Assembly (NCBI GenBank): GCA_977030845.1
Contig: OZ365114.1
Span: forward strand, 25,172,001-25,236,000
Direction: 5' to 3'
DNA length: 64,000 bases
Origin: Fimbriosthenelais zetlandica
Lineage: Eukaryota
A program made the position numbers and the translations under genes. The stretch's first letter is position 1, and each line of letters starts with the position of its first letter. This document shows, one piece after another, positions 37,396 to 63,220 of this stretch. The notes under the pieces were generated by a model. It had not been told where the DNA came from. It ran no database searches and saw only the letters and a list, made by a program, of their open reading frames with translations.

Positions 37396-37707
37396 ACAGA
37401 GCATCAGCCATAACAGAATCATAAAGATTTGCCTTTTATTATATTGATGATCTTCTAAGCTCCATCGCCAATGATTCAGGAATAAAGTGACTATTTTCAT
37501 TGTGCATGATAGTAGACTATAATTATTTAATAATCAATAAGTAATGTGAAAAAATAATCAATGAACAACATAGTGTGTCTGTCATAGGCACAGTTATTGC
37601 ACTGTCCGGTCCCTGGTTTTGGTCGTTTTACATGAAATAGGGAGAGGAATGATTGACAATAATAGAGAAGACTTTGTGACAACCGTATAATGTTGAGGCT
37701 TCACTTA

Positions 37708-37902
37708 ACGTGATTGGTACTCATGGTCACTCTGACCATATAGGAAACTTAAATCTCTTCCCTCACGCCTTGGTAATCGTTTCACGATATCCCAAGGGGC
37801 AATTTTTACTTTGATCATAAGTTCAAGGAGGTATAATATCAGAGTTTTCAGAATTCATGATTATTCACAGAATGCTTCTCTGTGGCGGGATTTGAGTGAA
37901 AA
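37708..37902 (+). pseudogene. Fragmentary MBLAC1 pseudogene
   Basis: 37708-37830 copies the 3' part of exon 3 ([25 protein letters not shown], then a 2-nt deletion and frameshift) with its donor; 37869-37902 copies part of exon 5; exon 4 is absent. Confidence 0.9.
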
Positions 37903-39189
37903 AGTGATTCTTACATGATAAATAATAAATACCGTTTCTGATGTCACGCCTGATTTCATTCTGACCCAGATAATGACCTGAACATTAGGTTGAGTTACAG
38001 CTGGGCAACTTTAATATTCTTAATATTCACAGGATATTAAATAACTGAGCTTTGATTCGGATCATATATACGTTCTTTATTCACCCTTCTGAATATTCAT
38101 GTTAAGGCAGTTGTGCGTGACGAATACACTTGGTATTAAAGAGGTCGAGTTTCGGTGTCTAGGAAATGGGAACTCTCTGATCGTCAGTAGTATCAACAGG
38201 ACTAGTAAACAACATGCTCGTATTATATACAAAGTCAGTATCGTGCGGGTTGTAAATACACTAGAAGATTCAACTTATCAGTACTTATCTATATTAAGTT
38301 CGTCACAAGAAGACTCCTGCCATTAGTTCCCCATCCACTCATCTTCCTGGTCAGAGGTAAAGTAAATTCACCTTTAAATATCACTATTATATCACCTATC
38401 ATTTCTAAGTGTAATCTATGGGAGCATGTTAGATCACTAAGGCTAGAAGTTGATATTATGGGTCTGGACCTGCAGTAACGTCTAAAACTAGGTAAGTGGA
38501 CCATCAACTTTTTATCTCGCCTTTCCTGTGATGTTCTCTGAGTGTATCATCGTTCTTGTGCAGTATTTCATATATATAGGCCATACAGAAAAACCTTTCT
38601 TTGATGGTTCATGTGAGAGAGCATATACTGTGGCGACATCTTCATCTCATAGGCATATACTTATAAAGGCATAACATATTACAATGGCCAATTCCTTATG
38701 AAGAAATATCTCAGGATTTTAAAGGATCTTTAAACACATTATTTGTTGGCACCATTCACTTCTAACCCCCTTGTGGCATAGCAACGCTTAAGCATAGGGA
38801 GTGGTCAGGGTCAACGTCATGTGACCATGACGTTTACAATTATGTAAATATGGCATGTGATAGTTCTTATATCTGCACGCAGATACCATGTATAGATTCA
38901 ATCATCTAATATGCAAGGATATTCATTATTAACAGGATACATATCTTTGACAAGTAGTGACCTTTATTTTTGAGAACACAGGTATAGAATTGTATACTTT
39001 GTTTCTTGTGATAAGCTTGCTCAGCATGTTTCCATTCAGCGACCTTCATCAGGTAGGACTTCTTAAATTATTGACTCAGACAGAAGTCATATATATATAA
39101 ATTCAATGCTTCCAAGTTACTGATTTTTTTGCACTTTATCTTATTCTAATAGCTTCGGGGAATCTGTGTTGAAAACCTGAGTGGTGAGC

Positions 39190-42100
39190 ATGGATTCTTC
39201 TGATGAGGACTCGAATATACCAACCAACATGTTTGTCGACGTAGACCAATCAATGGTGGTGGGCAGGCATGGTTACCTTGAAATCATAGAGAGGCGGCTC
39301 AATAATGAAAAGTAAATTTATCTTATCTTTTATTTGATTGATGTTTTATGTCGCAGCAAAGGCCACGGTCAATAATGACACGTTACTCAGTGGCTTCCCA
39401 CTACAAAAACCTGCTACCATGTAATGATACAACAATGTGTTGCCGCGGTCACTGGCCAATCGCACCCAGAAAAAATATACCACGGCCAAGACACGCTGAC
39501 TTGTCATTAGTATTTGCTCTGTAGCATATATAATGCAGAACAAATTGCATCGTGTAAAATGTCAATGATTGACTAGCTCTGTATAAAGTCCTATACCGGT
39601 ATAAAGCTATAAATTCTTTTGTACTGCATGTCAATTCTTTTATTATGTCAATTCTTCTTCTTTGAAAATGTGAATGAAAGATGTATAATAATACACACGA
39701 GTACTTTGTTTTATCATGTTTTCAGGATAATTGCCATTTCTGGTATGGGAGGTGTGGGTAAGACGACATTGACCTGCCTCTATGGTTATGGCAACATGCA
39801 GAAGTATAAAGATGGTGTCTTCTTTGTTGATGCTAGTAACATTGATATGTTACCACTGAACTTTGCTGATCTAGGTTAGTTACATATCCTAATAGAACGG
39901 AATAAACATTATATTCTTGTTGCAAAGAACGCGGCATAAACCTAATGTGGTCTATCCTTCAAATATGTTACAGTAGACCATGTAGCCTAATCAGTCATAT
40001 TTTCCTTCATTTCCTTTCCTTGGTTCCTTTCAAGACATCAATAGGTCTTATGTTAATACCATTGCTCTTCCTGCAGCTGGTCCATCGGTCATGGACCTGA
40101 TACCAAGGCCAGAGCAGGACATAACAAGCAGCATTAAGGCGGCTTCCAACTTCTTAGAGCGTCACTCTGACTATCTGCTAATCTACGATGCTGCTGATGA
40201 TGTTAGCATCCTTGAGGAGCTAGGTAAACAGCGGCCTTCAGGTGCCCGCTACATACCACCCAAAATCAAACTGAAAGGTCATGTCATTATCACCTCACGA
40301 TGCCCAAAGGAAAAATTCGATCTTGTACAAATCCTCGACCCGATCCATCTAGATGATTTGTCCTCAGAAGATGCACAGGTCTTCCTCTGGAGAAGAATCT
40401 ATGGTGATGAATGTCAGAATCTGGAAGAGAGGAAACAGCTGAAGACTTTGTCAGACCAGTATATTCGCTCTCATCTTCCACTCTTCCTGGAACAGACGGC
40501 TTCGTACATCAGGGGGGAGAACATGACGTTTAAGGAGTATATCAGAGAGATACAACACAAACAGAAAGTTCCAGTCGGGGCCGCAAGCTACGGAGATAAT
40601 CGGTTTGGCATCGACGAACGCTACATCCCAACGTTTGACGGCATTGAGAAAAGTTGTAAAGAGGCTGGTGTTCTGCTCAATTATGCTGCACTCTGTCATT
40701 CAAGAGACATTCCCATGTTCCTCTTCTCAACTCTTGCTTATACTGTCAATGTCCATATGGAAGGCTCTGACGTAGATGAGAATTCAAGAGCACTTGCTGA
40801 CTTCATTCTTGAGAAAATGAAAGAAGAAGGTTTCCAGGTAGAGGCGGACTTTGACTTCTCCCAAATCAATGACACAGGAGAGAATGGAGTGAAGAAACTT
40901 CTAGCTTTTCCTCGCAACACACAACTTGTAAACTACAAGAGGGGAGGTCACAAGTTCACTATACATGCCATCATCCAAGACCAACTGTGTGTCAGGATGA
41001 AAGAAACTGAAAAGATATCGACAGTGCATACTCTTGCAAGTCTCTTCCTGTATGTCCTCTCTTCGAACCATATTCCACCAGGCACCAAGAGAATGGTCCT
41101 GGCTCATGCGGACAGTTGTGCAGGCCATATCCGAGGCATGGACTCGGCAAAGACTGAAGCCCTTGTCCTGAAACTTCGTATAAAAACGGCATATATCTTT
41201 GCAACACTTGATTCAAAGGACGTAGCATGGAGAATCCTGAGTGATGTTGAGGAGAAGTTATCAAGGTTAGATGCCGTTGATATCAGAAAAGAGCTCATCT
41301 CTGTGAAGGCAAAACTACTCATCTGGCAACACAAAGCTACAGACGCCCTCAGAATTGCAGATGAAGGGTTAAAGCTTTTCGAATATGGGAATACTTTAGA
41401 CATGGCTGATCTGGATGCTACGAGACAGTACGCTTTGCTTTCCAAGTCTTCCGCCCATGCACTCATTATACTCAATGAGCCTGATTTGAATAAGATCCAG
41501 AAGCACATCTCTGAGGCGAAGAGGGCGTTTGAACATATCATTGGTGAGTTACCTTGATGTATTACCCCTAGGTTCCATAATATGATGTTTTATTTCCACG
41601 TTGTATCTTTAAATTAGAACTTGAATATTTTGTCGATTTATTTTTCGGTTCATAGAAAGGGACAGGCATAGTGGCATAGTGGAATATGCAACGTTGCTTA
41701 TGCTGCATGGCCAGATGCATCGAAACATTGCCTACAAAAACCAGGACAACCCAGACTTGCATAGAGAGGAATTGACCAAGGCAAGCAAATACTTGAAGGA
41801 GGCCTACGATCTCATGGATAAAAGCCACAGTACCACTGATCTTTGCAGGGTGATTCTTTTCAATATACTTAGAACTTTTGGACTTTTGGGGCTGATACCC
41901 CAATACATTCCCTATAGTAGACGATTCTGATACCCTATACAGTAGCAAACGTTTCTGGACTAATGCAATGAATTTCATTCTTTACATTCAACAGGTCCAC
42001 CTCAACCTGGCTGATGTAAAGCTAGGGAAGATCTCCCGAGCTGAGGCCATTACTAATATTGGTGAGAGCCATACAGATTTGGTGGAAAAACTAGGGTACA

Positions 42101-42543
42101 ATCATCGCTACTCAGCCTGGATTCTAGAAAAGATGGGTCAGCTCATGGCAGAGGAGAAGAAGCATGAGGAGGCTTTGGATTTGATGAGAAAGAGCCTTGT
42201 CATACTCAAAGAGGCTTATGGACAAGACGGTGGAAGTGTACAGATTGGTGGAACAATGCTGCAAGAAGGTAAGAACTTGGTTGATGAAATTACACATTAA
42301 CTGGGATGTACTTGGACGAGTCGGATGTTAAGCTATAGTTAGATGCATAGTAAAATTTCCATTTATCCTTGTCATTTCCGTACAGGGAAGTCGTTGCTTG
42401 CATTAGGACGGACAGAAGAGGCTCTGAAAATCTTTCTTGAGGCAGAGAAGTATTTGATTCTAACCCCACAACATGGAGCCTACAAAGAATTGTGTGGTCT
42501 ACTGGAGAAAACACACGAAATCCTTGAATACGAAACTGTGTGA
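39190..42543 (+). CDS. NB-ARC (STAND) NTPase - TPR protein, copy 2, 787 aa
   Basis: Exons 39190-39311, 39726-39874, 40077-41543, 41656-41849, 41995-42268 and 42386-42543; same exon lengths and phases as copy 1; 29 amino-acid differences by manual count. Confidence 0.92.
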
Positions 42544-42576
42544 ACAGCCATGAATACGAAACTGTTTGAACAGTAC
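42525..42576 (+). repeat. 26-bp tandem duplication spanning the stop codon of STAND copy 2
   Basis: TGAATACGAAACTGTGTGAACAGCCA followed by TGAATACGAAACTGTTTGAACAGTAC; absent in copy 1. Confidence 0.85.
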
Positions 42577-44149
42577 ATGCCATTTTACAGAATCATTAAG
42601 ATTTACCTTATTATAGATTATATTGATGATCCAAAAGATATATAGCATGCATCGTGATTTGTGAGAAGATAATATTTACTCGGATCAATTGAAAAGGATC
42701 AATCATGCTTGATAACGAATAGATAAGACATAGATGAGAGCATATACTGCTTGGCGACACATTATTGTGTCCGAGAAATATTTCTAGACGACTCTAGTAT
42801 AGAAATGTAAATTCTTTTATTACATGTTAAAGATACTTAAAATAATCACAAGACTAAAGTTGAGATGAGATTTACTGGTCCGCTGATCAGGCAAGAATAG
42901 AGTGACTATTTTCATTGTGCATGATAGTACACTATATTTAATAATCACTCTCAAGTGACATAAGTAATGTGAAAAAATAATCAATGAACAACATGGTGTC
43001 ATAGGGCAGTACAACTATAGAAAAGATGTAAACTTTGTATAGGTTAACATTGTGGTCCCATTTTATATATCAGTATTTTCGTTTTAAAGCTGGCACAGTT
43101 AAAATACACTGTCTGGTCCCGGGTTTTGGTCGTTTTACACGAAATACTGAGTTTAGTTTGACTACACTTGCACGATATAACATTGTTACTACACGGATAA
43201 TACCTTAACTTTAGAACAACTTATGTTTGACAATTAACCATTTGGATTAACACAAAACATCCTATAATAATTTTTTTTCTTCTTCATGAAGTGACCTCCC
43301 ATCTGACTGACCCATAAGCTTATAGAGGCGTTATAGAGGCATGACCAGAAATTGTTCATGTTCCCGCTAACCTAAAGCTAACGTCACCCTAAAATTTATA
43401 ACTGTATCAATTAACAATGTAAATAGATGGATTATATTGAATTTAAAAGTTATGGTGGCACAATGATTAGGAAACATGAGTTGTTAGATTTATATAATAT
43501 TATCATATCGAGTGGCTATGTACCTCTATGAAAAAAGCATGGAATGGTTCTATAGATCTCTTTCAGATGGCGTCGTTGTTGAATCCTAGATGTGGCACCC
43601 ATGATTTCAGACTGTTTCTAGCCTTCCCGTCTACCGTCGTTGTACCGTGCACAGATGGTGAGGTCACTTTAAATTGATGGTTGTATTTTTTTATCACTGT
43701 TTGACATCGTCACAAAGACACTGAGTAGGAATACATCATTATATGCACCTGTGTGTTGGGGCTCATCGAGTCATCTGGACGCATGCACCAAGAGGACTGC
43801 TGACCATCTGTAAAATAAATCCCAAACAATGATACACACTTCATTCCTGAGACATGCACTAAAATCTGAAGCTGCAACATCAATAGATTCTTATTCAAAT
43901 GAAATAAGTTCCTACATCATTGCATTCCTTTAATTCCTAGGTTTCAATAAATTTTCTATCAGCTATGGTTCTCTAGTTTTTCAAATGAGTTCCTTTAAGG
44001 AGGTCTGTAGTATTGAAACATCACAGTTTGTTTTACATGTAATTGGTTTGATCCGTGGCTGCTAGCTTGAACCCGGGGGATCCATATCGGCCGTAAACAG
44101 TCATCTGACAATGTCTCTGTACTATTTTCACAAGGTCCCAAACGAATGA

Positions 44150-45050
44150 AGTTCGTTAGTGGAGGATTACTGTCGTGGTCGGTCGTGATTCAGTCGGCCA
44201 TCAATCACGTTTTTGTATTGACTAACGGCATGAAAGCTGGCGCTGGGTGCAGCTCAGCCAAGCTGCATTATGAGATCTCCACCAAGCCATCGATACAGAC
44301 CAGCTTTTATATAGACTGCCTTGGTCATCTAGGGCTCCCACTAAACACCACTCCTTCATGGCTGACCTTCAACTGCTCCTTCCTTTGCCCAATATACCAG
44401 GGGTTCATGTTGCACACAGAAAGGTTGACATCAAACATGTATGATGCATCGTCCACTATTATACTATCTTGCAAGTTTCTCTTGAGAATGGCTTTCATGT
44501 ATAATCCTATAGAAGCATGTATAGTCACCAATTCAGCATTTAAATGCTGCATTGGTGATTGCAAGAACAAGTACCAATGCAGGCTATATATAGATACATG
44601 TATCGTAATACTCTTAAATCTGGTGACACCATACTGGTGCTGTCAGAGATCACTGCTTGGATCCTTTGCTTCTAGGAGCAAGTTGACAATGTTGAATTAC
44701 ACTCAATCTCAATGGGGAATTTCCATGTACTATGGCACTCTCGTTGGTCATCTATTTTACTTGGAGCCCACCGGCGTCTTTCCTATCTTCCTCCCAATTA
44801 GAACCAAGATGGATGACCCATCAGTGCAAGTGAGAGTTCTTTCAGGGCTTCAGGAGTGAGAAATTGCTTCTGAACTGTTATTGAGTTCATCTGGGGCCTG
44901 TTTCACTGAGGCTTGAATTTTGCGAGTCTTGCATAAAATAGAATGATATCCTTCAGTTCTTGAGAAAACCTCGAGGAAAAGCGTTTTTAGTTGAAACAGG
45001 CTTTAGAGCTTCCCGCAAGGTGGATCAGTTTGCGAGGAGCTAAGGTTTAT
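44150..45050 (-). mobile_element. Decayed LINE (CR1/L2-type) reverse transcriptase
   Basis: GPDEL-like motif, PEALKELSLAL, QHQYG, and YIGQRKEQLKV...SGSPR*PRQS (degenerate SGVPQGS) on the - strand. Confidence 0.6.
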
Positions 45051-45915: not shown

Positions 45916-47019
45916 GAGCCTGGAATATGGATTGCCTCATGAGAATTATTCAGTTGGGTTCATACTTCAGTTCCAGTCTTCTGGTTGGATGAAATATGAT
46001 AATACTCCCTCATTAACCATGGCGATACGGGCTCGTCAGGGGAAACTACAGCCCGTGGTGAGAGGACAGCATTTCATGTGTTACCCTTGACAATTTCACA
46101 TGCCATTTGTCAAATGACAAAAATGTCATGTCATTCAGAGCTAACATTCTTCTTCGGTGTTGTTTTTTTAATACCAGTTGAATCCGGACAGGCCCTTCTG
46201 CTATATTCAGAATTGCCTAAGGCGTACTAGAATTAATGAGGTCCCTTATCTCTGTTCTTGTTCTTAATTGATTAGCGTTTGATAGCGTTCTGTAAGGAAC
46301 TGATAGGTTATATTCTATAGTCCTGGCATGCTTTATCCACTATAGAGCGATTGAAGCACAAGACAATGATAATTATCTGCGGATTCATCAGCATACCCGA
46401 CGCTTGTAATAATCTGCTCTGGTTAGATGGAAAACACCCAGATTATATTCAGAGCAGTATATTTGGCAGGCAAGACCCCACGTTCTCCCCTATAGTCTCC
46501 TCATCAGTCTATAAATCACGGACTTGTCAAGGCTTGGTTGACACCTTTGACTTTACTCCATCCTCCACCCACTGCCTCACCATTAACCCATTCCAAACCT
46601 TATACAATTCCCTCCGCAAGCTGTAAGCCGCTGGCCCAGGGCCAACAAAAAGCCTTCTCTCTGAGGCAATCCGTGCCTGGAGAAAGTCTGCTAAAAAAGC
46701 TTTGTCCATGCGAATCGTGCTTCCAGTAACACCATTACAAACTGATTTGGTTCAGATTCAAGTCCTGCACCCCAACAAATTGGCCATTATTCCTTGGTTT
46801 TCCTTTTAATTGATGAATTGGCATGGTCGGAGCAAGCCTCCCATCTAATCCATTAGCAGCCCTGTTGTTTTTAAGGTCTCTTTAGTATTTACTTCAGTAA
46901 GATCTATCCCGAGGGTGAATGAATATTCAATATCTTAATGAAAAGGCTTCACTGCCTGTGGTGTGGATATTCTTTGGGTAAGATAGTTACACTCACAATG
47001 AGAAAATGGACTCACCCTC

Positions 47020-50000
47020 TCAATAATAGTTGCAGACATCGAAACAGTCACTGTAACTTTTCCTTTCTTCATACATACATAGCCCAGTGCAGAAAGCAGA
47101 AGCTCGTTCCTGGTAGTCTGTGCTGTAGGACAAACCAGACAAGGGATGAATACAACATACACTAATTACAGATGGCTGCTGCACTGTATACAAACGTGTA
47201 GAAAAACAACCAAAATCGATCAATTTAGGAAATTCATTGAATAGATGGAACCACGTATTTGATATCCTAATCGACTAGCTTGAAGACTCGAGAGCCAATA
47301 CAACGATATAGAAAAATATAAAGTTGTACAAGATACAGCCCTGATGGGAGAAATAACGTGAAATTCTGAAGCATCATGCAGAGGAATGGTATGAAAGGCC
47401 ACATCATCTACCAAGGAGATACGGACTCATCTTCTCCTTATATTTAACAAACATCATGCATACATTTCTCTCTGTGATATAAGAAAGTGTACGTAGGCTC
47501 GCCATCTGAATAATAATCTAAATGCTTCAACCCTAAATCTGCAACTTTGTGATCCTATAATTTATAATGGTTATTCAATCTAGTCACTCCATTTGTTGAC
47601 CATGATTAAATTTCTGTTCATCTCATTAAACCAACAACATGACTGCTAGCTAAGTCACAGAACACAGGCGCAAACCACAATGCAAACGAGGCTACCTAGA
47701 CCGGAACAGGAAGTCAGTGGCAGCCCTGGTGGCAGTCTAATCAATCACACGCTAGAATGCCAGTGAGGCCCCAAAGTACGGTTCCTGGATAAATAACTCA
47801 TCATCGATTTCATTTCCATGTTAATGAGATATCCCAATACAAAAGGAAGCTTCATTATCCTGTTTTATGTGCCCGGCTCCGTTGAATGCTGCCATATCCC
47901 TTGCTGGCCCACTATCGCTGAATTTCAATATGGCTGCCAAGTCCTCTGTGCCGTGTTGTGCTGCAGTGACTGGAGGGGCATCACTACTGCTACAAAATAT
48001 CCCGACTCAGATTATTAACTTTCTTAATGTCATCAAAAATGCTTGCACTTTTATTTCTCCCAGGGGGATTTCAATTTAATCGAAAACTCGAAAACGAAAA
48101 TGAGGGCGAAGAAAAAAACCTTTGGCAAAATTCTGAAATGTTAGATGTCTATCAACATCTGTGACGGCTGTTTTGTACCCAGGCACTCAAAGATAAGATG
48201 AGAGATGGGCCTCGTATAGGCTAGTTGCCTGCGTGACTTTTACATTTTCCTTTCCCTTTCGTTATTCGTGATAGACTTCAGCCTTCGTTTCGCCATTGTT
48301 TTCATGATTGATCTGATTAGACGAAATCGCATTTGAATTGCATTTGTTCTCTTTGCTCTTGGGTTTGCGCCTTAAGAAGAGTGAGGCTAGGACAATATTT
48401 ATTTAAGCTGAAATCACAACAACACCATATCACTGGGAAAGAATCTTAACAGAAAGATGATTGATGTCATTTTTCTCTTAGGGTGCATTTAGAAGTGCTC
48501 GATTTTCAAGTAATTGGATAAACAGGAATATGAATTGGTTGAAACGTTAATATTGGTTGTCTGTGATACTGAATCAAAAGGATTCCAATGGCTTCTTTAA
48601 TTGGGATTGAAGTTGAAATAATATCAGAAATGGAGAACATAGTAGATTTAAATAGTCATATCCTGTTTGTTCAATTACTCATATTATATCTAAGGGGGGT
48701 TAATTGTGCTTTATAGACCTTAATAAAAGCAAACATCCAGATACTATTTAGCTTCCTACAAGGTTTTAGGATCTTGGTGTCTATTAAAATATCTTTCGAT
48801 TGTACAACGGTTGAATAAGGTTCTCGTTTATTTCTGATCTAAAAATCCTTTAAATTATTTCAATTGTGAAAATAATGTTGGTTATATACATGCTTAATTA
48901 ATGACGAAATAAAGAGAAACCAACTTCATGTATCATACGTGGCCCCCTGCATCCCTATTCAACGAGTTTTGGTGTACATAATTCCCTTTTCCCTATACAT
49001 TTATGACTTTAAGGTACATTGCCTTTACAATAAATGCTGCCAAAATGAAATTTCGGCAGACAACCTCGATTTGTCTGCTGGGTGTATATTAATACTTCCC
49101 TATATTGAAGGAAGGTTTAACCCCACAAGGGGCCGCATTTGATGCAAGATAACCTAATAATTATACTTTGAAGCAATAATCTTAACATTGCAAACTTACA
49201 AACTCCCACTTTATAGAGGAAAGTAAATAACGAATTAATTCTATTACTCAGCTTTTTCATAAGTGAAAGATATTTTAGCTTAAACGGGCCTCTTGCATAC
49301 GTTTAAATAGCTCGATCTTGTCTTTTAAATGATGCTTGTATAAAGAACGGGATCAAAATTAAAAAACAGAAATAAATAGGCCCCCGATATGTTGGCGACA
49401 CATTTACCCTGGGGAGGACATTTGCGGGACACCATTAATATCATAAATTTATCTCAAGAATAAAATACCACACACTCTGTGAATGAAAGTATCTTCACAC
49501 TTGGCAATGAAATTCATGGTTGTAGGATTGGTTGTAACATTGTAATCAAAGAAGAGAAAAACACTAAAGTGAACCTGAACTTACAAGCTTCCAGTTGAAA
49601 GGTAAAGTTGAAGTATAACAAATCAGAGGAAAATATACGGTCAACTACAAATTCCTAGTTATTAAAGTATAAATATAATGGTACTGTAGTGAAGGATACT
49701 CAATAGGAAAGCCAGAGGATTCTAAAAGTCATACATCTAAAAGTTAAGAAAAACTTGTCTAAGGATACAGGAGTTCAATAGATACTACATATAAGATAGA
49801 TTTTTGTTTTAGAGCCAATCATGATTAACTTCTGTCAGTGAGAATTTGAGGCCAATATAGAATAAGAATATATATATTACTTCTACATATTATGATTACA
49901 ATAATTCTGTATTTTTCTAATATATTACTCCGGAAATTGGGAATCAGTGAGATATCCACAAAACATGACACGACTCAATCACAAACGACAATGACTCCAA

Positions 50001-53000
50001 TAGTAAAAACACTATGGAATATTCCATTTGATGATAGGGTGAAAAGACAATATAATTACAAATTGGCTTGGTTTGGCTTTACAACAGTGAGATACCAGTG
50101 AGCTGTGTGATAGAGCAAGCTCTAAAGGAAGCCACGATGATCCATCCGAATTCGGGTCTCATTCAGTCTGAGCCGAAAAGGAATCAGTACTTTCTCTTAA
50201 TCAAAAGAATTTTAGTCCATGCCTTTCCAGCGCAGATATTGACGTGCGCACAAGCCAAAGTAATACACCAAAAAGGAGTGCAACGTGTTTAGACTTTCAA
50301 CGAGGGAGGAATCCTTTTAGGCTGAATATCTCTCAACCTTTTAGGTGATCCCTCGTCCCCTGCTAATGGAATTGGTCCCTCGGGGACCACAGGCCAGGAC
50401 ATGTTGGAATTCAAAATAATATCTAACATGGAAAGACCAGCTCATCCCAGAAAGATATGAAAACTGATAGGTATTATTCCAATTTCATCTTTAAAATAAC
50501 AGGCTGCCAGGAGGTCATAAAATGTAATCATGTGTGCTCTCCAGTTTAAACCCTTGTCAATTTCAGAAAACCCTCTTCAAAATGTCTAAGACCCTCAAGC
50601 AATCACTGAATTGAAGGAAATCACAGGTATTGCACTTCACAAGCCTTCACAAGTGAGCTGATGGCATGTCGTCTCGCACTCATTGCAGCAATTCATCACC
50701 AAAAATAGGCGATAATTGAGAGTTTGAGGAGGTCAACAACCTTGACCTTGGACACCAACTTTGTAATCTTGGTCGTTCGCGAGGGAATTTCATGGACCAG
50801 AAGAAGAAAGACATGAACACGATGCAAGGAGAACCAAGTTCTATTTAAGGAGATTTTCCATCAACAGAATGACATTAAAATATAGTAAATTATGGAGGAT
50901 TATACACCAAGAAGGCGGATAAAATAACATAGTATTATCTAGAGACTGTCGGGATTTTGCTTGCCTTTTGCATATGTTTCAAAGACAGGTTAACCCGGAC
51001 CTGAATGAAGATGAACATTATAGCAATGGCGAGGCAACAATCCCATAGAATTCTGTCTACTGTATTTATAATGCATTGAGTAGAGGATATGGGACAGGGG
51101 ATGGATGACAAAGACACAGGAGGAAGAAAAACTGAAGGTCAAAAACTTACTATCTTTTCTGACGTGATCCGCTGATATCACTGTTCCTCTGTAGTGACTG
51201 TTATGGAGAGAAAAGATCATTATACAAACCAACATCATATAAATTGGGATATTGCTAGAGTAATAGAGAAAGTTGAGTGATAAACATTTTAACATGCAAT
51301 CATTTATGCCAACAACCAAATTTGCTTGCTAATAGCAATAGAGAGATTTTCAGGAAATAAAGTTGAAAGTAAAAATTGCGAACGCGGTTGTATTACAGAT
51401 CTTTCAATGTCAAATCCCAAACAAGAAAAGCTAGTTTAGAAAAGCAGGAAAAAAAACAGCCTTTTTCCCCTGTGTGTGAGTAACAATCTTCATCAAATGC
51501 ATTGAGAATTGAAAATGGCAGGCGGTGCCATAATGTCCCTCTAGGGGCCAGACAAATATTGGATCTAAATGTAATTGAATGTACAAAGCAATTACTAAGA
51601 GCGTGTCTCGCCATACCTATCTCCCCCACCGTGTTACCAGCACCGACTCCTTGATTGAAAGTATCAGAATGGATTAGGTGGGGAGCATAACATGATTTCA
51701 AATATGTTCCATCCTTATTAGACTCTTTGAACGATCCCATTGCTCCATCTATAGAGCTTAGCAGAGGATTAGAGGGGTACTTATCACTTGGAAAGAACAC
51801 CAGAGATTTCACCCTTGAGGTTTGATAAGGGCAGATAAGATTTATTAAGGGAAGCTGTGTTCTTGGAAGGGTTTTCGAAATGGTACAATGGGGAATTGTC
51901 CAGACTCTTATAAGTTGCTATTGAGTATGAATATTAAAGCTTGTAAGAGAGTACATAGACCCTTATGGAATAATTATGACGAGGCTTCCATGAAGATACT
52001 TTCGTATCAGTTCAGATCAGGATTATCGACAAACTCTACTCATTGGACTTAAAACCTCATCCGAGTTCAAATCGATGTACAGAACTCTGATACCCTATCA
52101 TTAAAGGCCCGATACGGTCTTCAGTGCTGGCTTCCACCATGATACAGCCGTCACAAAACTTACACTATACGGCACAGTTCATCTGAATAGAGCTCCATGT
52201 ATAGGTTCTGATGTATTTCATGTGGTCATGTTTATCGAAACATCGAGATGGGGATTTGCCTTTGAGAAGGATCAGAATGGTGTCAACGTTGAACATTTCA
52301 CATGGCCATGTGATCAGCGCATGACTGGCTTTATCAACGGCACAAGGCTAATCTCACCAAACCACGCATTCCCCCAGAGAATTCACTTGCTGAATGTTAG
52401 TGGTAGAACATTATAGACAGTCCTTCATCAATATTATGGCTACTCAGAGTTTATTAAGCATAACGTATGACCAAATGATCACCATTATTGAATGTCTAGA
52501 CGGACGTCTAATAATAAATTTACATTGATTACAATAGGTTAATTTTCATTCTTCTGATAATTTCTGTTGTCCCAAGTTGTTCATGTTGAAGTGTATATAA
52601 AAGGAGGAAATAAGAGAGGATAACACAAATACAAGAGATGGAAATGCACTGTTAGAAGCTAAAATAAACTATTATTTATCTCTGTTTTTTACCAACAACC
52701 ATGCTGTGCATCATAGCTGTAATGGGAAACTGCACTAGAGCAAAGAATATAACATCCTGTTTTTTGTAATAGCAGTGTCAACTTTGGTTATGGATGGTAG
52801 TTATGGGAGTCCATTTCATCACCATAGTCAAATAAAGCTACAATGTTGGAGACAAATGGAGACGAGCAACATAACCTCAAGAGTATCATCTATCTCGCTA
52901 CATCTCATGTTTTTTAAAACTTATGTCATGCTAGAAATCAATCTCTTGATATCTATTAACTAATAATAAAATAAATAGGGAATAGGAAATCATTGACATA

Positions 53001-56000
53001 ATCTACGATTAAAAATACTACTAAATGTGTTGTATGGAGATTCTAAGCCAAAAGAAAAATACAAAAGATACCAAACACATGCAAAGCCAAATGTTGTGTA
53101 TTCCAATCTCCCAGCTGAGAATAAGCTGTGACCTTAGGGTAGGCAATCTGCAGTTAAGCGATTTGCATTTAAGAATCGCAAGCTCAATATATAGACTACT
53201 GAAGACCTTAAATCAACTCACACCCACCTGTGACTTCAACGTTTTCAGAGCTGCCTGCAGTGCATTTGACTGTAAATATAAAGGAGATAAACTGTTGATT
53301 GAAATTAATTTATTATGAAGGAAAGCAAAGAGTAATAGAATATCTATAAAGAAGAGCTGAACGTCATGCAGCTCACTGCAAATAGAGCATGGCACAAATT
53401 GTTCCTTAATTAACCTCAAATTAACCTCAAAATGATGAAGAGGCCTTTGCGAGGACGAGATAGCAATGGAATATTGGAGAAAGAGTATATTTATCACCTA
53501 ATAACTATCAAGGCATATCTTTACCAGCATAAAGCAGGCAGCAAATGATAATATGATAACGACTATTTTCCGCATATTGACATTGGGAAATCATGAGGCA
53601 AGACCATCAATATTCTCTGAGGTCTCTGCTCGTCCATAGAGAAAGCAAGGATTCCTGAAGGTACTGGAGGCAGACAGTTGTATTAGGTCTTCAGCTCACA
53701 CTCTGTCTGTCTGCCCCTTGAGTACCTCTCTCCTGTGAAAGGAGATGGAAAGAAGAGCCTTGGTCACGTGCTTGAGCTGCAAATGCTCGTCGACAATAGG
53801 AAGAAGGCTGTGTGCCAGTTCTTTCTACAGTCTTATTATATGTGTATAATGTTGTAATAAGAGGTTCGTGTACATATCGAGACAACATATGGTGTATTTG
53901 GTGAATATAAGCGTACCTAAATATATAAAAAAATAACATTTCACCATAATGCATTTGGAGGCTGGGGTCGGGGAGATATATAATATAATACTGGAGTTGC
54001 AGTAATGTATTGTAATAGCCAAAAATCTACTAAATTATACGTTAATATGTTTGTCTTTGCTGGTCGCAATTACCGAAAGGTGCTTTCTGTTAAGAGCAAT
54101 CAGAATCGAGGACATACCCAGACTACTGTCCCTCTAGAGAAACGCCGGTTCTCACTAAGCTATTCACGACCAATCCCCCAACTGATACTTATAGACCTCG
54201 ACACCCCCTGCTGGGATGTACAGCTCATTCCTGTACAACTTGCTGGTGAGATCCTGATGGTTTCCTTTTGAAACTTCCACTCCGGTGGCTGGTATTGCCT
54301 TGAGATCCTCCGGGAAATCTCATTATTTGGGGAATTGCTTTTACAAGATCTCACTACAGCAATTGAAGCAGGCCCTTCTAACATAATTTTCTCGATGTCC
54401 GTAGCTGATATTTTCTCAGCATTTTATTTACAATTTCTTATTATGAATTTGAGCAATTTATTCTACAATGTCAGGGCCTACAACTTCAGATAGTAAACCG
54501 CCTCTATTCTATTCTTGCTTGATTAAAAACTATTTCTAATCAGTGTTGGGGTCCGCAAGGAATTTTTAAAAACATAATCTATAGCTCATTCAATCCCTAG
54601 GAAGGAAGTAATTTGAATAAAAGGCCAGGTAATGAAAACCGAGCTCCAGAAATTGTGGCTTGAGCTGAAGTATTGAGCTGACAGACCGAGCTTTGTACAC
54701 AATTTGAAGGGTAATATTTCCCAAATGATCCATGGAGTCACTGTGGCACCAATCCCTCCCCGAGGCTTTATAGATCTGCCAGTGCCATCCATTATACCTG
54801 GAATGGAATTCAATACACAGACACTTTCCTTGCAATCAGGATGGGCATGAGAATTTATCAATCACCTCAAACCTTCCCAATGCCATAAGAGAGACTTCAA
54901 TCTTGAGCTAATATCCGACGACCAATCTTTATACCCTGCCTAGTTTCAGTGCCGGGGAAGTGCCTCCTCATGACAATGGCAGGCATTTGATATCGGAAGG
55001 CGTTTTGACTGCCAAGCGATCATTTCCATAATGAAGCAATTACTTCAAGGGGCTATATGAAAGGAAGCATTTTTACGAGCTGTCACTTTCATTTGTTATG
55101 ATCTGACTGGGAATATTTCTCATGGATCAAAGTATTTCGCCTGGGAACCCTGTGAATTTTGCTTGAATACACCGTACCAAACAGTGCAAGGAAGCTTCCT
55201 TAAAAGTCTTGCAAGATCATGAGCATGAATAGATCCATTATGTTGCATGTAGAAAATATATCAATTTAGTTGAAACACATGTAACAATATATTGGTGTTC
55301 ATTAATATGAAAAAAAGATAATGTTAACATTGTCGACATCTGATAACATTTCCTGTACTGCTGGCCGACATTCTGTTTTACTCAAGACATTGATCCGTGA
55401 AGAGATGGGGCTTCACCAGAGCTGTGCAGGCCCTATAACAGATTGATGTATTTATAGGCGTTTCCATGGAAACAGTTTATCTCCAGAAAGCCAGTGTGAA
55501 TTCATCAGTCTGTTTGGATTGAGATAGTCTCCAAGCGCGTTTCTCTAATGCCCCATTTAGACATTGAAAAGTCAATTTTCATCAGTTTACTCTGGCAGTT
55601 CAGTTTACTATCGCAATTGTATCAATGTTATTCAAGATTGGTCACCCAGTTCCTACAACCTTTACTTGAATTCTCCTGATCCCTTATAAGCCAAATTTCC
55701 CTTTCCTGCTCAGGAAGTCCCAGAATCCCCCCATTAATACAGATCTGTATTAGAAATACTGAAACCCAAGTCTAAGCACTAAGGGCCTTAACCCAAGTCT
55801 AAGCACTATGCCTTAACCTAAGCCTAAGCATTAAGGGGCCTTAACTATTATCATTCTAAACGCTAGTCATATGATTCTCAACTAACTTCTGAATTTTGAT
55901 GAATTACAATTACACGCAATGCACCCTGAACATTGTATACGTATAATACAAAATAGCATATGCCAAGAGTCCATTGTCTTGTCATGCATGGTTTTACCCT

Positions 56001-59000
56001 TAAAGGGATCCTTCCATGAGTCGAAGTACCACACACAGCTGTTAACTTTACTACCACAGATCTAAGTAGTAGTGGGATCTAAGGACGTCCTGAAATCTTA
56101 GAACAGTGATACTTAATTTTCAGTACTAGCTGCAGAAAGAAAATGAATAAAAATCATCCGTACTTAAATCTAGGTACAGTCGTCCTAAGGGTTTAAGGAC
56201 GTACTTAAGAGGACGGACGGACTTGACTTGGTCAAAATAAGGATAGGACATCTTAGTGCTCATTGCGTGTCTGTGAAAGTGCTCCTTTAAGCTGATTGTT
56301 GAGCAGATTGTTAGTGGAACATATCTGCAGTTGGGGGTGTCAGATATATGGCAGGAGCCACTCCTGTTGGCCCAGCCATGAGCATCAAACCGGGAAAAAT
56401 TGTGCCAGGGCTGTCCAGATAAATCGTAGACACTGCCTCCTCTCAGTGCCCCGGGCCCCGCAGCAGCACCAGTAGGCCCGGGTAAATGTGATTGTCACTC
56501 CACGGAGGTGGGTATTATTCTGGCGGCTGGATTCTAGTTAAAGCAAGCCAAAGGAAATGTGATTAGTATTAGATCAGTCCTAGCTTCCGGGCCCCCTGCT
56601 GATTTGCAGGTGTTTTTCTCCGAGCAGGGTTCTTGCATTGGTCTCATATTGGAAACGAAAGCTCTCCTGAGATCTGAACGTTTTTGGTGATGCTTTTGCA
56701 GCTGATGTACTTCATATGAAACATAAACCCCTGATGAACTAGTTTAAGGACATCTTATACTGTATCTGTATGCATGAGTAGGTAAATGTATTGGTAGTGG
56801 GTACCATTATCATAGCAATGACTTCCCATGGGTCCAAATCAGGGTGCTATGAATTCAGTCTAAGTCCACAGCAGGGTCTATAAACTAACAGAGGTCATGG
56901 GGATAGCATTGCTTTCTCCCCGTTGTCCTCCATTATCACTGGGCCTGGGTTGGTTGTTAGTCAACAAAGGGTACATGTCTTCTCATTTACGTAAGGTGAG
57001 TGATTGCCCATGATCACACTCTCTTGCGCCTGCCTTCCGGTAGCAAAGAGAACTGTTCAAACGTGCTATAGAGGGCCTGGTGATCTGGAACTCTGGAGGA
57101 CTTTACTCTCGGGCAATGGAAACTACGGCATGAGAATAGACCTGCAGTGTCAATGTAAACTATATCATGGTTCGATTAAAAAGGCCTCGAATGAGAGTAG
57201 AGAGTATTATATACGTTATGCTATCAGTATTATTCAGGTTGAAGAGTGTAATACCAGTTCAATCATATTTTGTCACTCAAGAAGGCATTGTCCATAATGA
57301 ACTAGAACAAAACTGGTTATACCTCACGCTGCTTTTAGGTCCCAGGAAGTGACAATGCCCACACAGCCATTAAATGGGGAACACGTATTTTAACTAGGAC
57401 GTGAATTTTGGGTCGATATCAGAGCTGCCATTCCCATCTGAGTGTTACGGCCCAGGACATCCCACGTAAAGTGAATTACTGTGTTGATCCTAGTCTTCCT
57501 TGTTTACCCAGGACCAAATTCCGATATCGCCTCTATCTACCCTGCCTCAAAGAAGCCGACTTAAACCCTGTTCCTCTTCTGTATAGGCTTCGAGACCGTG
57601 AAGGATGTCAGTCCATTCATGTGGGAGGAAGAGAAATCCATAGAGTATGTTTTATGGATCTGTGAATCTCTCTGTAGCATCATCTATAAGGGTATTATCA
57701 CCCCACAAAATCGAATGACCTTCATATATTCTATTTCTGACGAAGGAAGGTATATCTTTTTTCTTTTGAAAAGAAGGAGAGGTATATACTTGAGGCAATT
57801 TGTGTATATTATTGTAAGGTTCAGGAAACTTCCGCATCCTTATGAAAATAATGATGGTGATGCACTTGCAGGGGAATGATGATATAGCCTATACAGATTA
57901 TAATTTTCATAGAGGAATCACTGCATAAAAGGCATTGTGAAGCACCCTACTTGGGGAGTTATGGCATAGACTGTGGGGCATCATGGTGAACAGAGGTGAT
58001 ATGATAAATGCCGGGATGTGTCTGAAGGCATGGACTAACAATGAATGTTGGCATGGATATTGAGGGTCGAGTGTAAATAAAAGTGGCTGGGCCTGACTTC
58101 CCATGTTGAAGTACACTAAGGAAAAATGCCGGATCTTCAAGTTTTACCAAAGAGCTTAACAAGCAGGGCTTTCTACCCCGTCAGAATTTATTCATGAGGA
58201 TCAGACATGGGAGCTTCTTTAAGAACGTCCTTGCTTGAAATCAATGGTAGCAATTCCTTTTATTTTCAACATGATTGGCATATTGGCAGATGCTTTCCCT
58301 CTCAAAGGAAGATATTCAAGGAATAGAAAATGTTATCTGAAGCAATTGGTGGCATTCATTGTAATTCAACGATGGACATGCACTGAGACATGAAATGGAT
58401 CGCGTCTTTAATGTCACATGACTACGAATCGATGCGCGCCATCAATTTGTCTCTTCTCTCCTTTTTCTTTGCGATGTTAGTTTTTTTAGGGATAAGAAAC
58501 CAATATGAGTAAGGTACTTCATTACAGCCCTGCCAGACTAAATGATCCTGTCAGTAATTCCAAGACGTTTTTTTCATTCCTTGGCTTTCCGGACAAGCCC
58601 AAACTTTCCACCTGATGTTCTTGAAAGGGAGAGTATTGAAAAGCTCGGAGAAATGCTTCGCCATATTCGACTGCCTTCCACAGTGAGACCTTTAAGAATT
58701 TCTTTCCTTATATGGGAGAGGTGTCTGGCTTCACTCCTCCCTGGTCTAATAAAGCTGTCAGAGCCATGGAAGCCCTCAAAAGAAGCAACTAGTGAGAACA
58801 CTACTGCTGAGCTAAGCAGAGATGTGAGCCTCGATAAATATTAACCCACAAATGACTAGAGAATATAGCTCGCGTAATATTTCTAGATACCGGTTTAATG
58901 ATGAGAAGTGATAAAATATCTACTTTTATTGAGCAGATATCGGCTTGACAAAACTCCACCACTGTAATACTAAGCTTTATGTGCAGCCAGCCTGTACCAT

Positions 59001-62000
59001 AAATTCATTTTTATGGCCTCATCTTCATCGCTAGATGATAATTTATTCCTTCAGAATACCCTTCCCTGTTCCATATTTACAGGGAGATTAGACTTTAAAA
59101 TCCCAGATCCTACATGGTCCAGCCACAAGCCCCGAGGAAAAAGCTCGTGCGCAACTGAGGGCTTATTCACATGCCTAATATGATGCATATTAGGCATGGT
59201 AAAGTCTGAAATGATATGAGCCTATAGAGGTCCCTGGTGTGAACATGCCTTTCGTGCTCAAACCAAAGGAGTATACTGCATCTACCTATTACCCTACATG
59301 CAGGGAGTTCCAAGATGAAAATGAATCTGGTGACCATTTCAAAGCTTTGATAATCTGTAATATATCCGGAAACGAAGGGAAAAGGTCTATAGAGCTATAG
59401 AGAGAACATCAAGTAAGATCAGCCCTCTACAGCGGTGCATCTCTCATGGAAGAACTCCAGTTCTCACTGTAATAAAGATGCAATAATTATTGTTAAAGGT
59501 ACCCTCCATTCAAGGTGATTTATCTTGGACTCTTGGGCAAAACGACTAAAACCACCGTACCTAATTACCAGCGCAATTGGCCATGCTTCCCGGAACTTCC
59601 CAATTGGGTGGATTCATAAGGGGACCAGTGTATATTGCTTCCTTCACCTAAATCGGTCCTTCCTTCCTTCTTTTGTAGTCCTCCGGATGATGCATCAGAT
59701 ATCGGAGGCTTTGGAACAATGGCCATCAACAAGTCAGTTAATCATCTTTTGTTGGAAAGACTGGCCTTTGAGCGTCAGCTCGCCTTTGACATCCTCCCTG
59801 CTTGTTAGCAATATTTGGACTAGAAAAATAAGCGGAGGCTCCCCATAGGTCATTATATAAGAGAAAAGTGAGGCCAATGATGGTGATTTTGCCTTCGTTA
59901 GACAAGGCAAGCCCAATTATACCCTATCAGTGGACTCTGAAAGCCATGGTACACTTAATAATACTACATTATGGCTTCCGGAATCTAGATCATGTGTCTG
60001 GGAAGCTTGTATTTAAGCTTGAGGTGACGTAAAACCCAGCATACTGCTCGGGAAGGATTGCAGTGGTTAATAATAGGGAATTATCCTATTTTGCTCACGT
60101 ATTGTATAATATATTCTGACCTCTCACCTCATAGACACCATTCAGGGTACCATTCATAACAAAACAAGTAGGATGTTGAACCACCCTGCTTCACTCTGCT
60201 AGTGCCTAGGTGACTACCAGTCCACCCTCACAGAATCAAGTCGATGAAATACCCAGAGACTTTAAGAAACTTTTTTTTAATTTCAAGCCGTTTGGAAATT
60301 TCAACCAGATTGCTCTATATATATGCTTCATTGCCAGATGGATATGCATGCATGGAGTCCACCTCATATCATATGTCTTCTCTGGGGCCACTTCCCGGAA
60401 AATGATAGTGGTATAATAAAGCTAGTCTACAGCATATATCTTTCTGAAGAAACAAGCCCGTGAGCATGTATTAGATGTCTATATTGAGATGATCAATGCA
60501 GTCATGTTGCCAGGCATAGAGATTGACATTGATTGCATTGTTATGAATGTTGCAGTTGCTTGAGGCAACACTTCTGGATTGCCTCCATTAAGACTCCCTC
60601 ATTAAGATGGAGGCTTTCTTCTGCGTACAATATGACCCATGGACATATCTCAGATCAACCATTCAAAACGTCCTCATCAGGCAAAGCATGTCCTTCAATG
60701 GACTTTCAATCGCTCAGGCCAGTGAGTCGTGTTCATGCATGAATATATGGAATACGTGTCATCTCTGGATGCCGGTATCCAATTCTAAAGCAGTGAAACC
60801 AGCGGCTGTCCCCAGATCATTCTTTCGACCTAATTTTCCTTGCCTGACTGGCCAGCAGTATTTACACATTCCAGAGAGACAATGCAATTTCTAAACCCGC
60901 TCATCCATTGCTTTACCCCACTGACCATGTAAAATTCAGTGACTGATAGACCAACATCATCTCATCAGTATATCATGCACCCATTTTGGCTACGGCTGCC
61001 CAAATGCTGATCAGAGAATATGATTTAACACGTTAGGAATATGCTTTAACACATTACGACGAACAACCTGTGTATTTTCGGAGTGGCAGCCTATACATTG
61101 GTCGAGTCTACGGCTGAAACTGGTATCCTGGCTGCTTGAGATTCCACAGTCACAGACTCAGTATCAGGTCTATGAATGAGGAATGACCTCCCAGGGAGTA
61201 GTTAGGAAGGGTCACAACAGTGTCTTTCAGGCCCTTCACCTTGCATCATTAGAGTGCCATTAGAGGAGATGCTATAGTGACAAACAAGCCTATAGTGCCC
61301 GTGTAAGCAGGCCTCTTCACTTTGGATAGGGTCCATTTTTCCAGCCTACATTTTCTCTGAGTGATGTTAACGTCACATTGGAGGAGCCTGGGCAGCATAT
61401 TTGTATTAGATGGATGGCCTGTGTGGAGGAGTCACGACAGGGGAGCACTCATAATGTAATCTCCCTGCCACAGGCAGACATGTCAGTCCTAAAGCTTAAC
61501 CAATAGGAGGTCTTTTTACAGATGCCAGCTACCTGTACAGCCAATGATGGGCTTCGTTAGAGTGGACAATTCATTACGGCCATACCAAATTTGTTTTTTC
61601 TACCTTAACTATACAGTACAGCGAAATGACCCACAGTGTCCAGTTTTTGAAAGTGACTGCGTTTTAAACATTGCTGGTTTTTTAAAGAGTATTATATCTT
61701 AAAATAAATGAGCCGAACACCACTAAATCAGAGGGATGGCCGCTTATTATATAGTGAAAGGCTTTTCGGTTCAGCTTCAAGGAGCATTTGTGAGGGAGAG
61801 CAGCTTGTGATTAGATTGTGCAGAAGTGGGCTGTTCAAAAGCTTTATGGGGCAGGCTGATAATAAAGAAGGACATAGTGACGGTGAAACAGACTGAGAAG
61901 CCCGTCCTCAGTCCTCGCCTGTCTCCTGCACTGGCAGGAAATGGAGGTCAGCAAGAAATCTCTTGATCAGACAAATATTTTTTTCAATGAAAGACTTCGG

Positions 62001-62524
62001 TAATGTATAATCCATCACACCGTCGATGGAAAGGAATCTGGCTCCTTAGAATTTAGATTTTTTATCAATTGCTCATGAACGATGCAAGAACCTGAATGAA
62101 GTATTCCCCCTGCAGAATGATATTACCTTAGCCTAAACATATGATGGACGCGCCGGAACTGCAATGTCTACTATTCCTGTTCAGAAGTGCTTCTCACCAT
62201 GATATCAAATGCACTTATCGATGCTCTTCATCTGTGAAGTGCACTACTTAACAGTCCGACATTCCGGATAAGACTTCTACCAAACCAAAAAGAACATGAG
62301 ACGACGCGTGCGACAACAAACATCCTGCGACAAAATTATAAGTTGCCGTATGCTCTACCACTATAGTTTACTTTGCAATGAATTAAATTTTGAGTTAAAT
62401 TTGTGAATTTTCTGTCTTTTGCACTCACCTTGTGTGGAATGAATGCGCCCTCTACCTCAAGGACTGATGTGGCCACATAGAGGACCAAGCAGGCTGTAAG
62501 AAAGTATCCACCCAGCTTGTTCAT
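47020..62524 (-). CDS. Putative secreted neuropeptide/hormone precursor with a C-terminal four-cysteine peptide (95 aa; 106 aa with an optional exon)
   Basis: Exons 62524-62429 (signal peptide, donor AAG|GTGAGT), optional 53732-53700, 53269-53228, 51197-51151 (donor GTAAGT) and 47122-47020 (stop); phases 0,(0),0,2 are consistent. Product: MNKLGGYFLTACLVLYVATSVLEVEGAFIPHK-(ERGTQGADRQS)-SNALQAALKTLKSQ-SLQRNSDISGSRQKR-YTDYQERASAFCTGLCMYEERKSYSDCFDVCNYY*. The exon chain is a manual prediction. Confidence 0.7.
51290..51620 (+). mobile_element. 3' end of a decayed LINE (L2/Crack-type)
   Basis: KLRT..YY..F (~51373) and NALRIENGR....P...R (~51496-51550), resembling the KLRxYxxFK and LxIExGR motifs of LINE ORF2 C-termini. 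Confidence 0.6.
54160..55620 (-). mobile_element. Heavily decayed LINE RT relic (L1/Tx1-like?)
   Basis: Scattered KIDFS, FIMEMIA, GIKIG and FLGI motifs in the expected order; very degenerate. Confidence 0.35.
55763..55845. repeat. 25-28-bp tandem repeat, 3 copies
   Basis: Unit AACCCAAGTCTAAGCACTAAGGGCCTT and variants. Confidence 0.85.
57300..60900 (-). mobile_element. Decayed RTE-like LINE (endonuclease + RT) in intron 1 of the peptide gene
   Basis: WNV (60873-60865), GIQ..TRIP (~60773-60749), GWFN (GDFN-like), W.KHFSELFN (~58663-58635) and a PDG...LF....G..P remnant (~58180-58120), in canonical order. Confidence 0.55.
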
Positions 62525-62584: not shown

Positions 62585-63220
62585 CTAACCCTCAAATCTT
62601 TCTTTCTCTCACTTAAATAGACAAAGCCCAAAATGGTCACCGCTGCTGGCGCTTGTGATAGGGGCGGAGGTGGTGGAGGTGGAGCCCCCAGATGGTTGCG
62701 TGGGTGTTGGAATGCTGAGTCACGATGGCGGATTGGTAATCAGGAGGACCAAGAGCAGCAAGCAGTCTTGGACCCGGATGGTTCCCTCTTTCTCCCACCT
62801 CCCACTGCTGCCTCTCTTCCTCTCTCTCTCCTCCTCTACACCACCAACCAATCATTGCTCAGCATACCGACCCCCACCTGGAGGCGCCCCATCAGCAGAC
62901 ATTTCTGGGTTTCTTCCATATATGGAATGGCTATATGACGTAAAAGATGTTTACGGGTAACTATTGAACCAGCATCATATGAGGAACCCTCATGTGGAAT
63001 CCCCAAAACCTACTCAATCAAGGAAGGCCTTGCAATGACGCAAGCAAAAGGGGTGTTCTAGAAGGGGTAGTTGCCCCGCAGTATTTTTCCATTGTGACGT
63101 AAAGGAATCCCTTCCTGCATAATTAGAATTGGCTCGTTTAGTTTTTTTTACTCCAGTATGACGACTATGATGTTTTATTAATGGATTGTGACCTCCACCT
63201 ACCCAGGCCCACTGACGTTA
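62585..63220 (-). promoter_or_regulatory. Promoter of the putative peptide-precursor gene
   Basis: TATTTAA at 62619-62613; GC box 62661-62670; AP-1 TGAGTCA 62716-62722; CCAAT at 62732-62736 and 62848-62852; CArG CCATATATGG 62916-62925; TGACG cores at 62936, 63036, 63095 and 63213. Confidence 0.65.

Follow-up and report, generated by a model that had tools for sequence, protein, structure and literature searches.

The locus studied here raises the question whether several very short open stretches, dispersed along the minus strand of 64 kb of genomic DNA of Fimbriosthenelais zetlandica (contig OZ365114.1, positions 25,172,001 to 25,236,000; this whole stretch is hereafter called the window, and positions are counted from its first letter), belong to one gene, and, if they do, what this gene encodes. 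A preliminary description, made from the letters alone, had joined them into a candidate precursor of a novel neuropeptide or hormone. We conclude with high confidence that they constitute an annelid QERAS proneuropeptide gene, which is spliced and whose product is probably cleaved to a secreted signalling peptide of 34 residues. An annelid host agrees with the near identity of this product to a translated expressed sequence tag (EST) of Sthenelais, as well as with the G+C content of the window, approximately 40%, compared to 39% for the chromosomes of S. limicola (PMC10352628). Judged from these data, the host is most probably a member of Sthenelais (Sigalionidae).

Gene structure

The gene is comprised of five exons, four of them coding, spread over approximately 19 kb of the minus strand. 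The following features have been identified (lengths in nucleotides, nt; UTR, untranslated region; the slash in splice signals marks the exon border).

62613–62619, minus strand: candidate core promoter with a TATA-like box (TATTTAA), located by a pattern scan approximately 90 nt before the ATG
62429–62524, minus strand: coding part of exon 1, 96 nt, with the initiator Met, the putative hydrophobic signal sequence and the start of the propeptide (AFIPHK); donor AAG/GTGAGT
53700–53732, minus strand: candidate 33-nt cassette exon with AG/GT signals, occurring at chance rate and unsupported
53228–53269, minus strand: exon 2, 42 nt, encoding the propeptide segment SNALQAALKTLKSQ; acceptor tttacag/, donor CAG/GTGGGT
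51151–51197, minus strand: exon 3, 47 nt, with the propeptide end, the RQKR convertase site and TA of a Tyr codon; acceptor ataacag/, donor ATA/GTAAGT
47016–47122, minus strand: exon 4, 107 nt, with the third base of the Tyr codon, 33 codons of the mature peptide, the stop codon (47022–47020) and 4 nt of the 3' UTR; acceptor cctacag/
43775–43808, minus strand: start of exon 5 (3' UTR), matched by a contig from the RNA run X1; acceptor ttttacag/
42942 (ATTAAA) and 42821 (AATAAA), minus strand: candidate poly(A) signals found by a pattern scan

All four coding exons have GT–AG borders. Spliced in frame by a script, their coding parts (96, 42, 47 and 103 nt) form 288 nt encoding a precursor of 95 amino acids, with a hydrophobic N-terminus, a short propeptide, the RQKR site, and then a C-terminal peptide of 34 residues with the cysteine spacing C-x3-C-x10-C-x3-C. 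The exon joins and the 95-residue product given in the preliminary description are thus reproduced exactly, and the match of this product to a named precursor (E-value 3.7e-21, see below) is far beyond chance. The Tyr codon following KR is split as TA/C by the 4,028-nt intron between exons 3 and 4.

Exon 1 extends further upstream of the ATG as 5' UTR; its coding part aligns with homologues and agrees with the Sthenelais EST translation, and tblastn places a weak local match to the signal/propeptide part of one homologue (P0002) exactly at this site. Exon 4 alone is recovered in the window by tblastn at an E-value of 3e-20, and the exon for a QERAS-type peptide is present there in a single copy. 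The donor of exon 4, GAGG/GTGAGT, lies 6 nt past the stop codon.

The gene model as initially drawn is essentially correct after three changes. A 48-nt variant of exon 2 has been dropped, as the dinucleotide preceding it is AT instead of AG, leaving it without an acceptor. The optional 33-nt exon has been dropped as well: its signals are good and it is the sole candidate in intron 1 passing a stricter filter (polypyrimidine tract plus GTRAG donor), but no homologue has it, and it is missing from the translated EST. Since the same filter yields 1.3–1.7 in-frame cassette candidates per 9.16 kb when applied to the whole window on either strand, one such candidate is the chance expectation. Finally, a 3'-UTR exon has been added; the exon at 47122–47020, previously taken for the last one, is internal.

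Transcript data

Two sources of transcript data bear on this model. The annelid QERAS alignment published as Additional file 10 of Conzelmann et al., 2013 (PMC3890597) includes a row for the Sthenelais EST FR770837, whose translation, available as noisy machine-read text, coincides with the spliced product at 87 of 95 positions. The segment order in this row, ...IPHK-SNALQAALKTLKSQ-(S)LQRNSDISGSRQ(K)RY-TDYQERAS..., spans all three coding junctions, does not contain the 33-nt exon, and includes the propeptide segment of exon 2 letter for letter. Sthenelais thus has practically the same precursor, with a few differences, e.g., near residues 10, 17, 21, and 93, which may be either text-reading errors or differences between Sthenelais species.

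The second source is X1, an oligo-dT seawater metatranscriptome run, with a 151-nt contig that matches positions 47083–47013 with two mismatches and then departs from the genome. The departing sequence has a single match in the window, at 43804–43775, likewise on the minus strand; it differs there at 2 of 30 positions, and 0 chance matches are expected. This sets the junction of exons 4 and 5 at 47016/43808, three bases fitting on either side. As the contig joins these two positions, exon 4 is internal and a fifth, non-coding exon exists: exon 4 is transcribed and spliced onward to it. The contig is approximately 97% identical to the window, and its source is probably a close relative or another population.

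Assignment to the QERAS family

Among 5.8 billion proteins, the best match of the 95-residue product is the Platynereis dumerilii "QERAS neuropeptide", as it is named in both UniRef and nr (E-value 3.7e-21, query coverage 100%). It is followed by nine more relatives originating from metatranscriptomes, and the whole-length matches have E-values of 1e-19 to 1e-21. The mature peptide is identical to that of Platynereis at 32 of 34 residues. In an alignment of 12 sequences we observe 19 invariant columns, all four cysteines among them, and all 19 are kept in the window product. The core Y-T-D-Y-Q-E-R-A-S-A-F directly follows the cleavage site (RQKR/YTDYQERASAF in the window product), and in nearly all transcript-derived homologues RxKR immediately precedes Y-T/S-D/E. 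The family name is legible in the peptide itself, Y-T-D-Y-Q-E-R-A-S.

QERAS was named among the proneuropeptide families with recognizable orthologues in annelids only (Conzelmann et al., 2013; PMC3890597), has since been recorded in Urechis unicinctus (PMC7737342), and is represented by a contig in the nerve-cord transcriptome of Eisenia fetida (PMC5688751). Hence, of the earlier proposal of an uncharacterized secreted signalling peptide, the secreted peptide precursor is supported, while the novelty is not: the homologues belong to a family known since its naming in 2013. The proposed layout with a putative signal peptide, a propeptide, an RxKR site and a cysteine-stabilized C-terminal peptide is borne out as well, and the family is classed as a proneuropeptide one.

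A profile of the peptide domain retrieves 28 representatives at E-values of at most 0.001, 23 of them at most 1e-10, from 1.84 billion cluster representatives, and nearly all of the 28 carry the same core. The family has two forms: the short one ends 2–6 residues past the last cysteine, as in the window, where the peptide ends three residues past it, whereas the long one has a C-terminal extension. In the published alignment the long form is that of Tubifex and a leech, i.e., of clitellates (PMC3890597, Additional file 10); the mature peptide of the window is approximately 79% identical to the long-tailed sequences.

Pfam contains no family matching QERAS precursors at E-values up to 1. The small Tim (twin Cx3C) mitochondrial proteins were considered as relatives and discarded on account of the furin-type RxKR site, the hydrophobic N-terminal signal, and the absence of any Pfam match.

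Signal sequence and propeptide

The hydrophobic stretch at residues 7–21 and the small residue at position –1 (VEG/AF) have their counterparts in the signal regions of aligned homologues. The putative signal peptide is probably cleaved at VEG/AF. This cut is favoured because the aromatic-hydrophobic-Pro residues following it align across homologues, AFIP of the window standing opposite L-Y-L/V-P and Y-Y/F-I/L-P. We also observe that just past the predicted cut all family members keep an aromatic or hydrophobic residue, a hydrophobic one and a Pro: AFIP in the window, and LYLP, YYLP, YFIP, and YYIP elsewhere. The window propeptide has lost the internal dibasic KR site that is found in most relatives and has KT instead.

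Intron conserved in the Tyr codon

The boundary of exons 3 and 4 in the window has the form TA/GTAAGT ... cag/C, that is, the Tyr codon following KR is interrupted by a phase-2 intron. In the genome of Paralvinella palmiformis (WGS project JAODUP01; PMC10414810), an exon ends with ...CAG AAA CGA TA/GTAAGT, and 374 nt further the reading resumes as ...ccttcag/C ACA GAC TAT CAG GAA AGA GCT. Tyr is thus split at the same place and in the same phase, the intron being 374 nt in Paralvinella vs. 4,028 nt in the window. The same split is present in a metagenomic DNA scaffold, L002 (...tgcctctag/C ACT GAC TAC CAG...). Moreover, all ten genomic-DNA open reading frames (ORFs) among the profile matches read Ser (AG followed by C or T) right before T-D/E-x-Q, which is the same signature. 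The conserved intron in the Tyr codon is a feature found here and lies outside the published definition of QERAS. An apparent intron-retention match (P0011, tblastn) turned out, by the multiple alignment, to be an over-extension of the alignment.

Two further observations concern QERAS-type exons in other genomic sequences. The deposited Paralvinella model P0020 (353 amino acids; positions 6001–10117 of L004, JAODUP010000615.1) includes the exon for the QERAS peptide but lacks the micro-exon with KR (8390–8455), and it runs past the peptide exon into unrelated downstream sequence; this annotation is probably wrong. In L005, a 24-kb metagenomic scaffold of animal origin, three diverged exons for QERAS-type peptides lie on one strand within 6 kb, and may be either tandem paralogues or alternative terminal exons.

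312–407, same strand: QERAS-type peptide exon of L005
4140–4238, same strand: QERAS-type peptide exon of L005
6016–6111, same strand: QERAS-type peptide exon of L005

Predicted structure of the mature peptide

AlphaFold2, run with an alignment of 31 sequences (A3), predicts a helix at residues 2–19, a three-residue turn, and a helix at residues 23–31, with mean pLDDT (predicted local distance difference test) of 91. The predicted helical hairpin sets the two C-x3-C pairs face to face, and its natural reading is that the cysteines presumably form inter-helix disulfides C1–C4 and C2–C3. A sequence profile search yielded no match in PDB at E-values up to 10, and Foldseek gave no significant match in PDB, all E-values being at least 6; the only small whole-length match was the plant alpha-hairpinin Luffin P1 (E-value 8.6, TMq 0.55, non-significant). 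The best hit of a wide VIA-align search, with Z of 4.9, was to generic hairpins within larger proteins and fell below the noise level of this tool for helical models. The feature search in ESM Atlas pointed to generic small cysteine-rich secreted peptides, both toxins and hormones, with scores below 0.9.

Proposed mechanism and alternative explanations

In the scheme we propose, the five exons are spliced into a small mRNA encoding a 95-residue preprohormone, which the signal peptide, probably removed after VEG, would direct into the secretory pathway. An enzyme of the furin/prohormone-convertase type would then cut after R-Q-K-R and release the C-terminal 34-residue peptide starting with YTDYQERAS. 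This peptide is predicted to fold into a helix-loop-helix hairpin, presumably stapled by the two disulfides mentioned above, and, being secreted, would signal through a receptor, with presumed neuronal expression in this species. Indirect evidence for the signalling role comes from the prohormone architecture, the conservation of the mature peptide, the developmental profile in Platynereis, and the Eisenia nerve-cord transcript. The alignments show a drifting propeptide next to an extremely conserved mature peptide, and such conservation would fit a constrained ligand–receptor interaction. In Platynereis, the expression of QERAS rises from approximately 10 reads per kilobase per million (RPKM) at 24–48 h to 299 RPKM at 10 days, as for the bulk of neuropeptide genes (PMC3890597).

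Several points weigh against this interpretation. Searches for RNA runs listed a single one, the seawater metatranscriptome, and its contig of approximately 97% identity covers only the junction of exons 4 and 5 and stops short of the exon 3/4 one, while the three coding junctions rest on the noisy machine-read EST translation and on homology. The cleavage site of the signal peptide has been judged by eye and by alignment. The literature text searched reports no receptor, bioactivity or cell-type localization for QERAS, so "neuropeptide" is a classification by precursor architecture, and mass-spectrometric detection of the peptide was not found in the searchable literature text.

As the coding junctions lie outside the RNA contig, and micro-exons of 42–47 nt with AG/GT borders are easily obtained by chance (there are 244 minimal in-frame candidates in intron 1 alone), one could suppose that short open stretches flanked by splice-like signals happen to join in frame and that the mRNA does not exist. 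We consider this possibility already refuted, its probability being negligible: the whole-length product matches QERAS precursors at the E-values given above, the Sthenelais EST translation shows exons 1–4 in the same order and register, Paralvinella has an exon 3/4 boundary that is identical to the base, and the RNA contig covers exon 4 and splices onward. It is also highly improbable, if less so, that the locus is an inactive pseudogene copy, with the expressed QERAS gene residing elsewhere in the genome. The locus has an intact reading frame, canonical signals at every splice site and each of the 19 residues invariant in the family; its product is in agreement with the translated EST, and a TATA-like box is present upstream; on the other side, the examined region is one 64-kb window, and the three tandem QERAS-type exons of L005 imply that duplication occurs in the family.

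The remaining alternatives accept a real QERAS-family gene and concern the action of its product. The mature peptide could be a defence or channel-modulating peptide (antimicrobial, protease inhibitor or ion-channel blocker) rather than a neural or endocrine signal. Such a function is suggested by C-x3-C ... C-x3-C placed on a predicted helical hairpin, which is the layout of alpha-hairpinins and kappa-hefutoxin-type peptides, by Luffin P1 being the only small whole-length fold match, although a non-significant one, by the Atlas feature neighbours among toxins as well as hormones, and by the lack of a reported receptor or bioactivity in the literature found. However, defence peptides and toxins usually evolve fast, whereas here 32 of 34 residues are identical to those in another annelid family and 19 alignment columns are invariant. 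Further, the peptide is not related to hairpinins or toxins by sequence or by any significant similarity of fold, and the developmental profile in Platynereis resembles that of classical neuropeptides, with a transcript in the earthworm nerve cord. Because the mature peptide evolves slowly and its exon is single-copy in the window, we rate this explanation as clearly unlikely. By analogy with toxins of similar structure, QERAS could also serve as an endogenous ligand for a kind of target that neuropeptides do not usually have, e.g., gating or blocking an ion channel directly instead of acting on a typical neuropeptide G-protein-coupled receptor, and the long basic tail of the clitellate-type forms might then add a second functional module; this reading seems unlikely as well. 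Thus, a proneuropeptide gene for a secreted signalling 34-mer is the interpretation we retain.

Genomic neighbourhood

Next to the gene we observe a tandem segmental duplication of approximately 5.1 kb (32,890–37,525 and 37,925–42,940), with copies 85–99% identical; it ends near the probable 3' terminus of QERAS. Each duplicate contains a long plus-strand ORF (34817–36427, 536 amino acids, and 40091–41557, 488 amino acids), followed by a TPR-containing ORF. The ORF at 36749–37156 has a weak Pfam match to TPR_12 (E-value 1.9e-5), and the other five of the six large ORFs of the window are without a Pfam match; in particular, an NB-ARC domain was not found by Pfam in the 536- and 488-residue ORFs at E-values up to 0.01. 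The sole database relative of the 536-residue ORF is one unnamed protein with 49% identity. Moreover, a 78-nt repeat is present at 31,904–31,981 and 37,708–37,785 (92% identity) and translates, by eye, to ...HGHSDHIGN..., a motif typical of proteins with the metallo-beta-lactamase fold. This suggests a further duplicated exon beside the duplicated ORFs.

Two ORFs are located inside QERAS introns, one at 44,146–44,859 on the plus strand (237 amino acids, intron 4), the other at 51,393–51,812 on the minus strand (139 amino acids, intron 2). Neither has a match in Pfam, and either may be what is left of a transposon or an ORF that arose by chance. A search with Rfam identified no RNA family in the window.

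Significance

Raw sequence can be enough for a correct reading of a gene whose exons of 42–107 nt are spread across 15–19 kb, while automatic annotation can misread micro-exon genes, Paralvinella P0020 being an example. As the family itself has been known since 2013, what is new here is the conservation of the Tyr-codon intron, the 3'-UTR exon, and the predicted helical hairpin. For annotation of QERAS in other annelid genomes, the conserved phase-2 intron and the intron in the 3' UTR are useful, as are the hairpin prediction and the finding that the family is very small; the same additions may help in the design of probes or synthetic peptides for receptor de-orphanization. The interest of QERAS, whose sequence is almost frozen across annelids, rests only in its orphan status.

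Comparison with known systems

In plant alpha-hairpinins and scorpion kappa-hefutoxin-type peptides, C-x3-C ... C-x3-C is carried by a helical hairpin. The QERAS peptide resembles alpha-hairpinins such as Luffin P1 and the kappa-hefutoxin-type CS-alpha/alpha peptides in having this cysteine pattern on two antiparallel helices, which in our case are predicted. It differs in that no sequence relationship or significant fold match is detectable, and the organisms, precursor layouts and activities are different. This likeness is an analogy of design, not membership.

Within the family, the long-form sequences (P0006–P0009, P0016, P0019, and P0022–P0024) share with the window product the RxKR site, the Y-T-D/E-x-Q-E/D-R-A-S core, and the four cysteines. 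On the contrary, after the fourth cysteine they continue with N-W-N/T-G-x-x-P-S-P-W and a long basic tail, itself 50–150 residues in length, where the window peptide stops.

The Platynereis dumerilii QERAS precursor (UniProt V5TE09, GenBank KF515937; PMC3890597) has the same organization as that of the window: a predicted signal peptide and a propeptide that is short and not conserved precede RQKR, after which comes the C-terminal 34-mer, beginning with YTDYQERAS and carrying C-x3-C-x10-C-x3-C. The precursors are also similar in length (91/92 amino acids in Platynereis vs. 95 in the window). Their signal and propeptide regions are only loosely similar, the overall identity being 47%, and the Platynereis peptide, in the version of PMC3890597, ends with ...NYYW, whereas that of the window ends with ...NYY.

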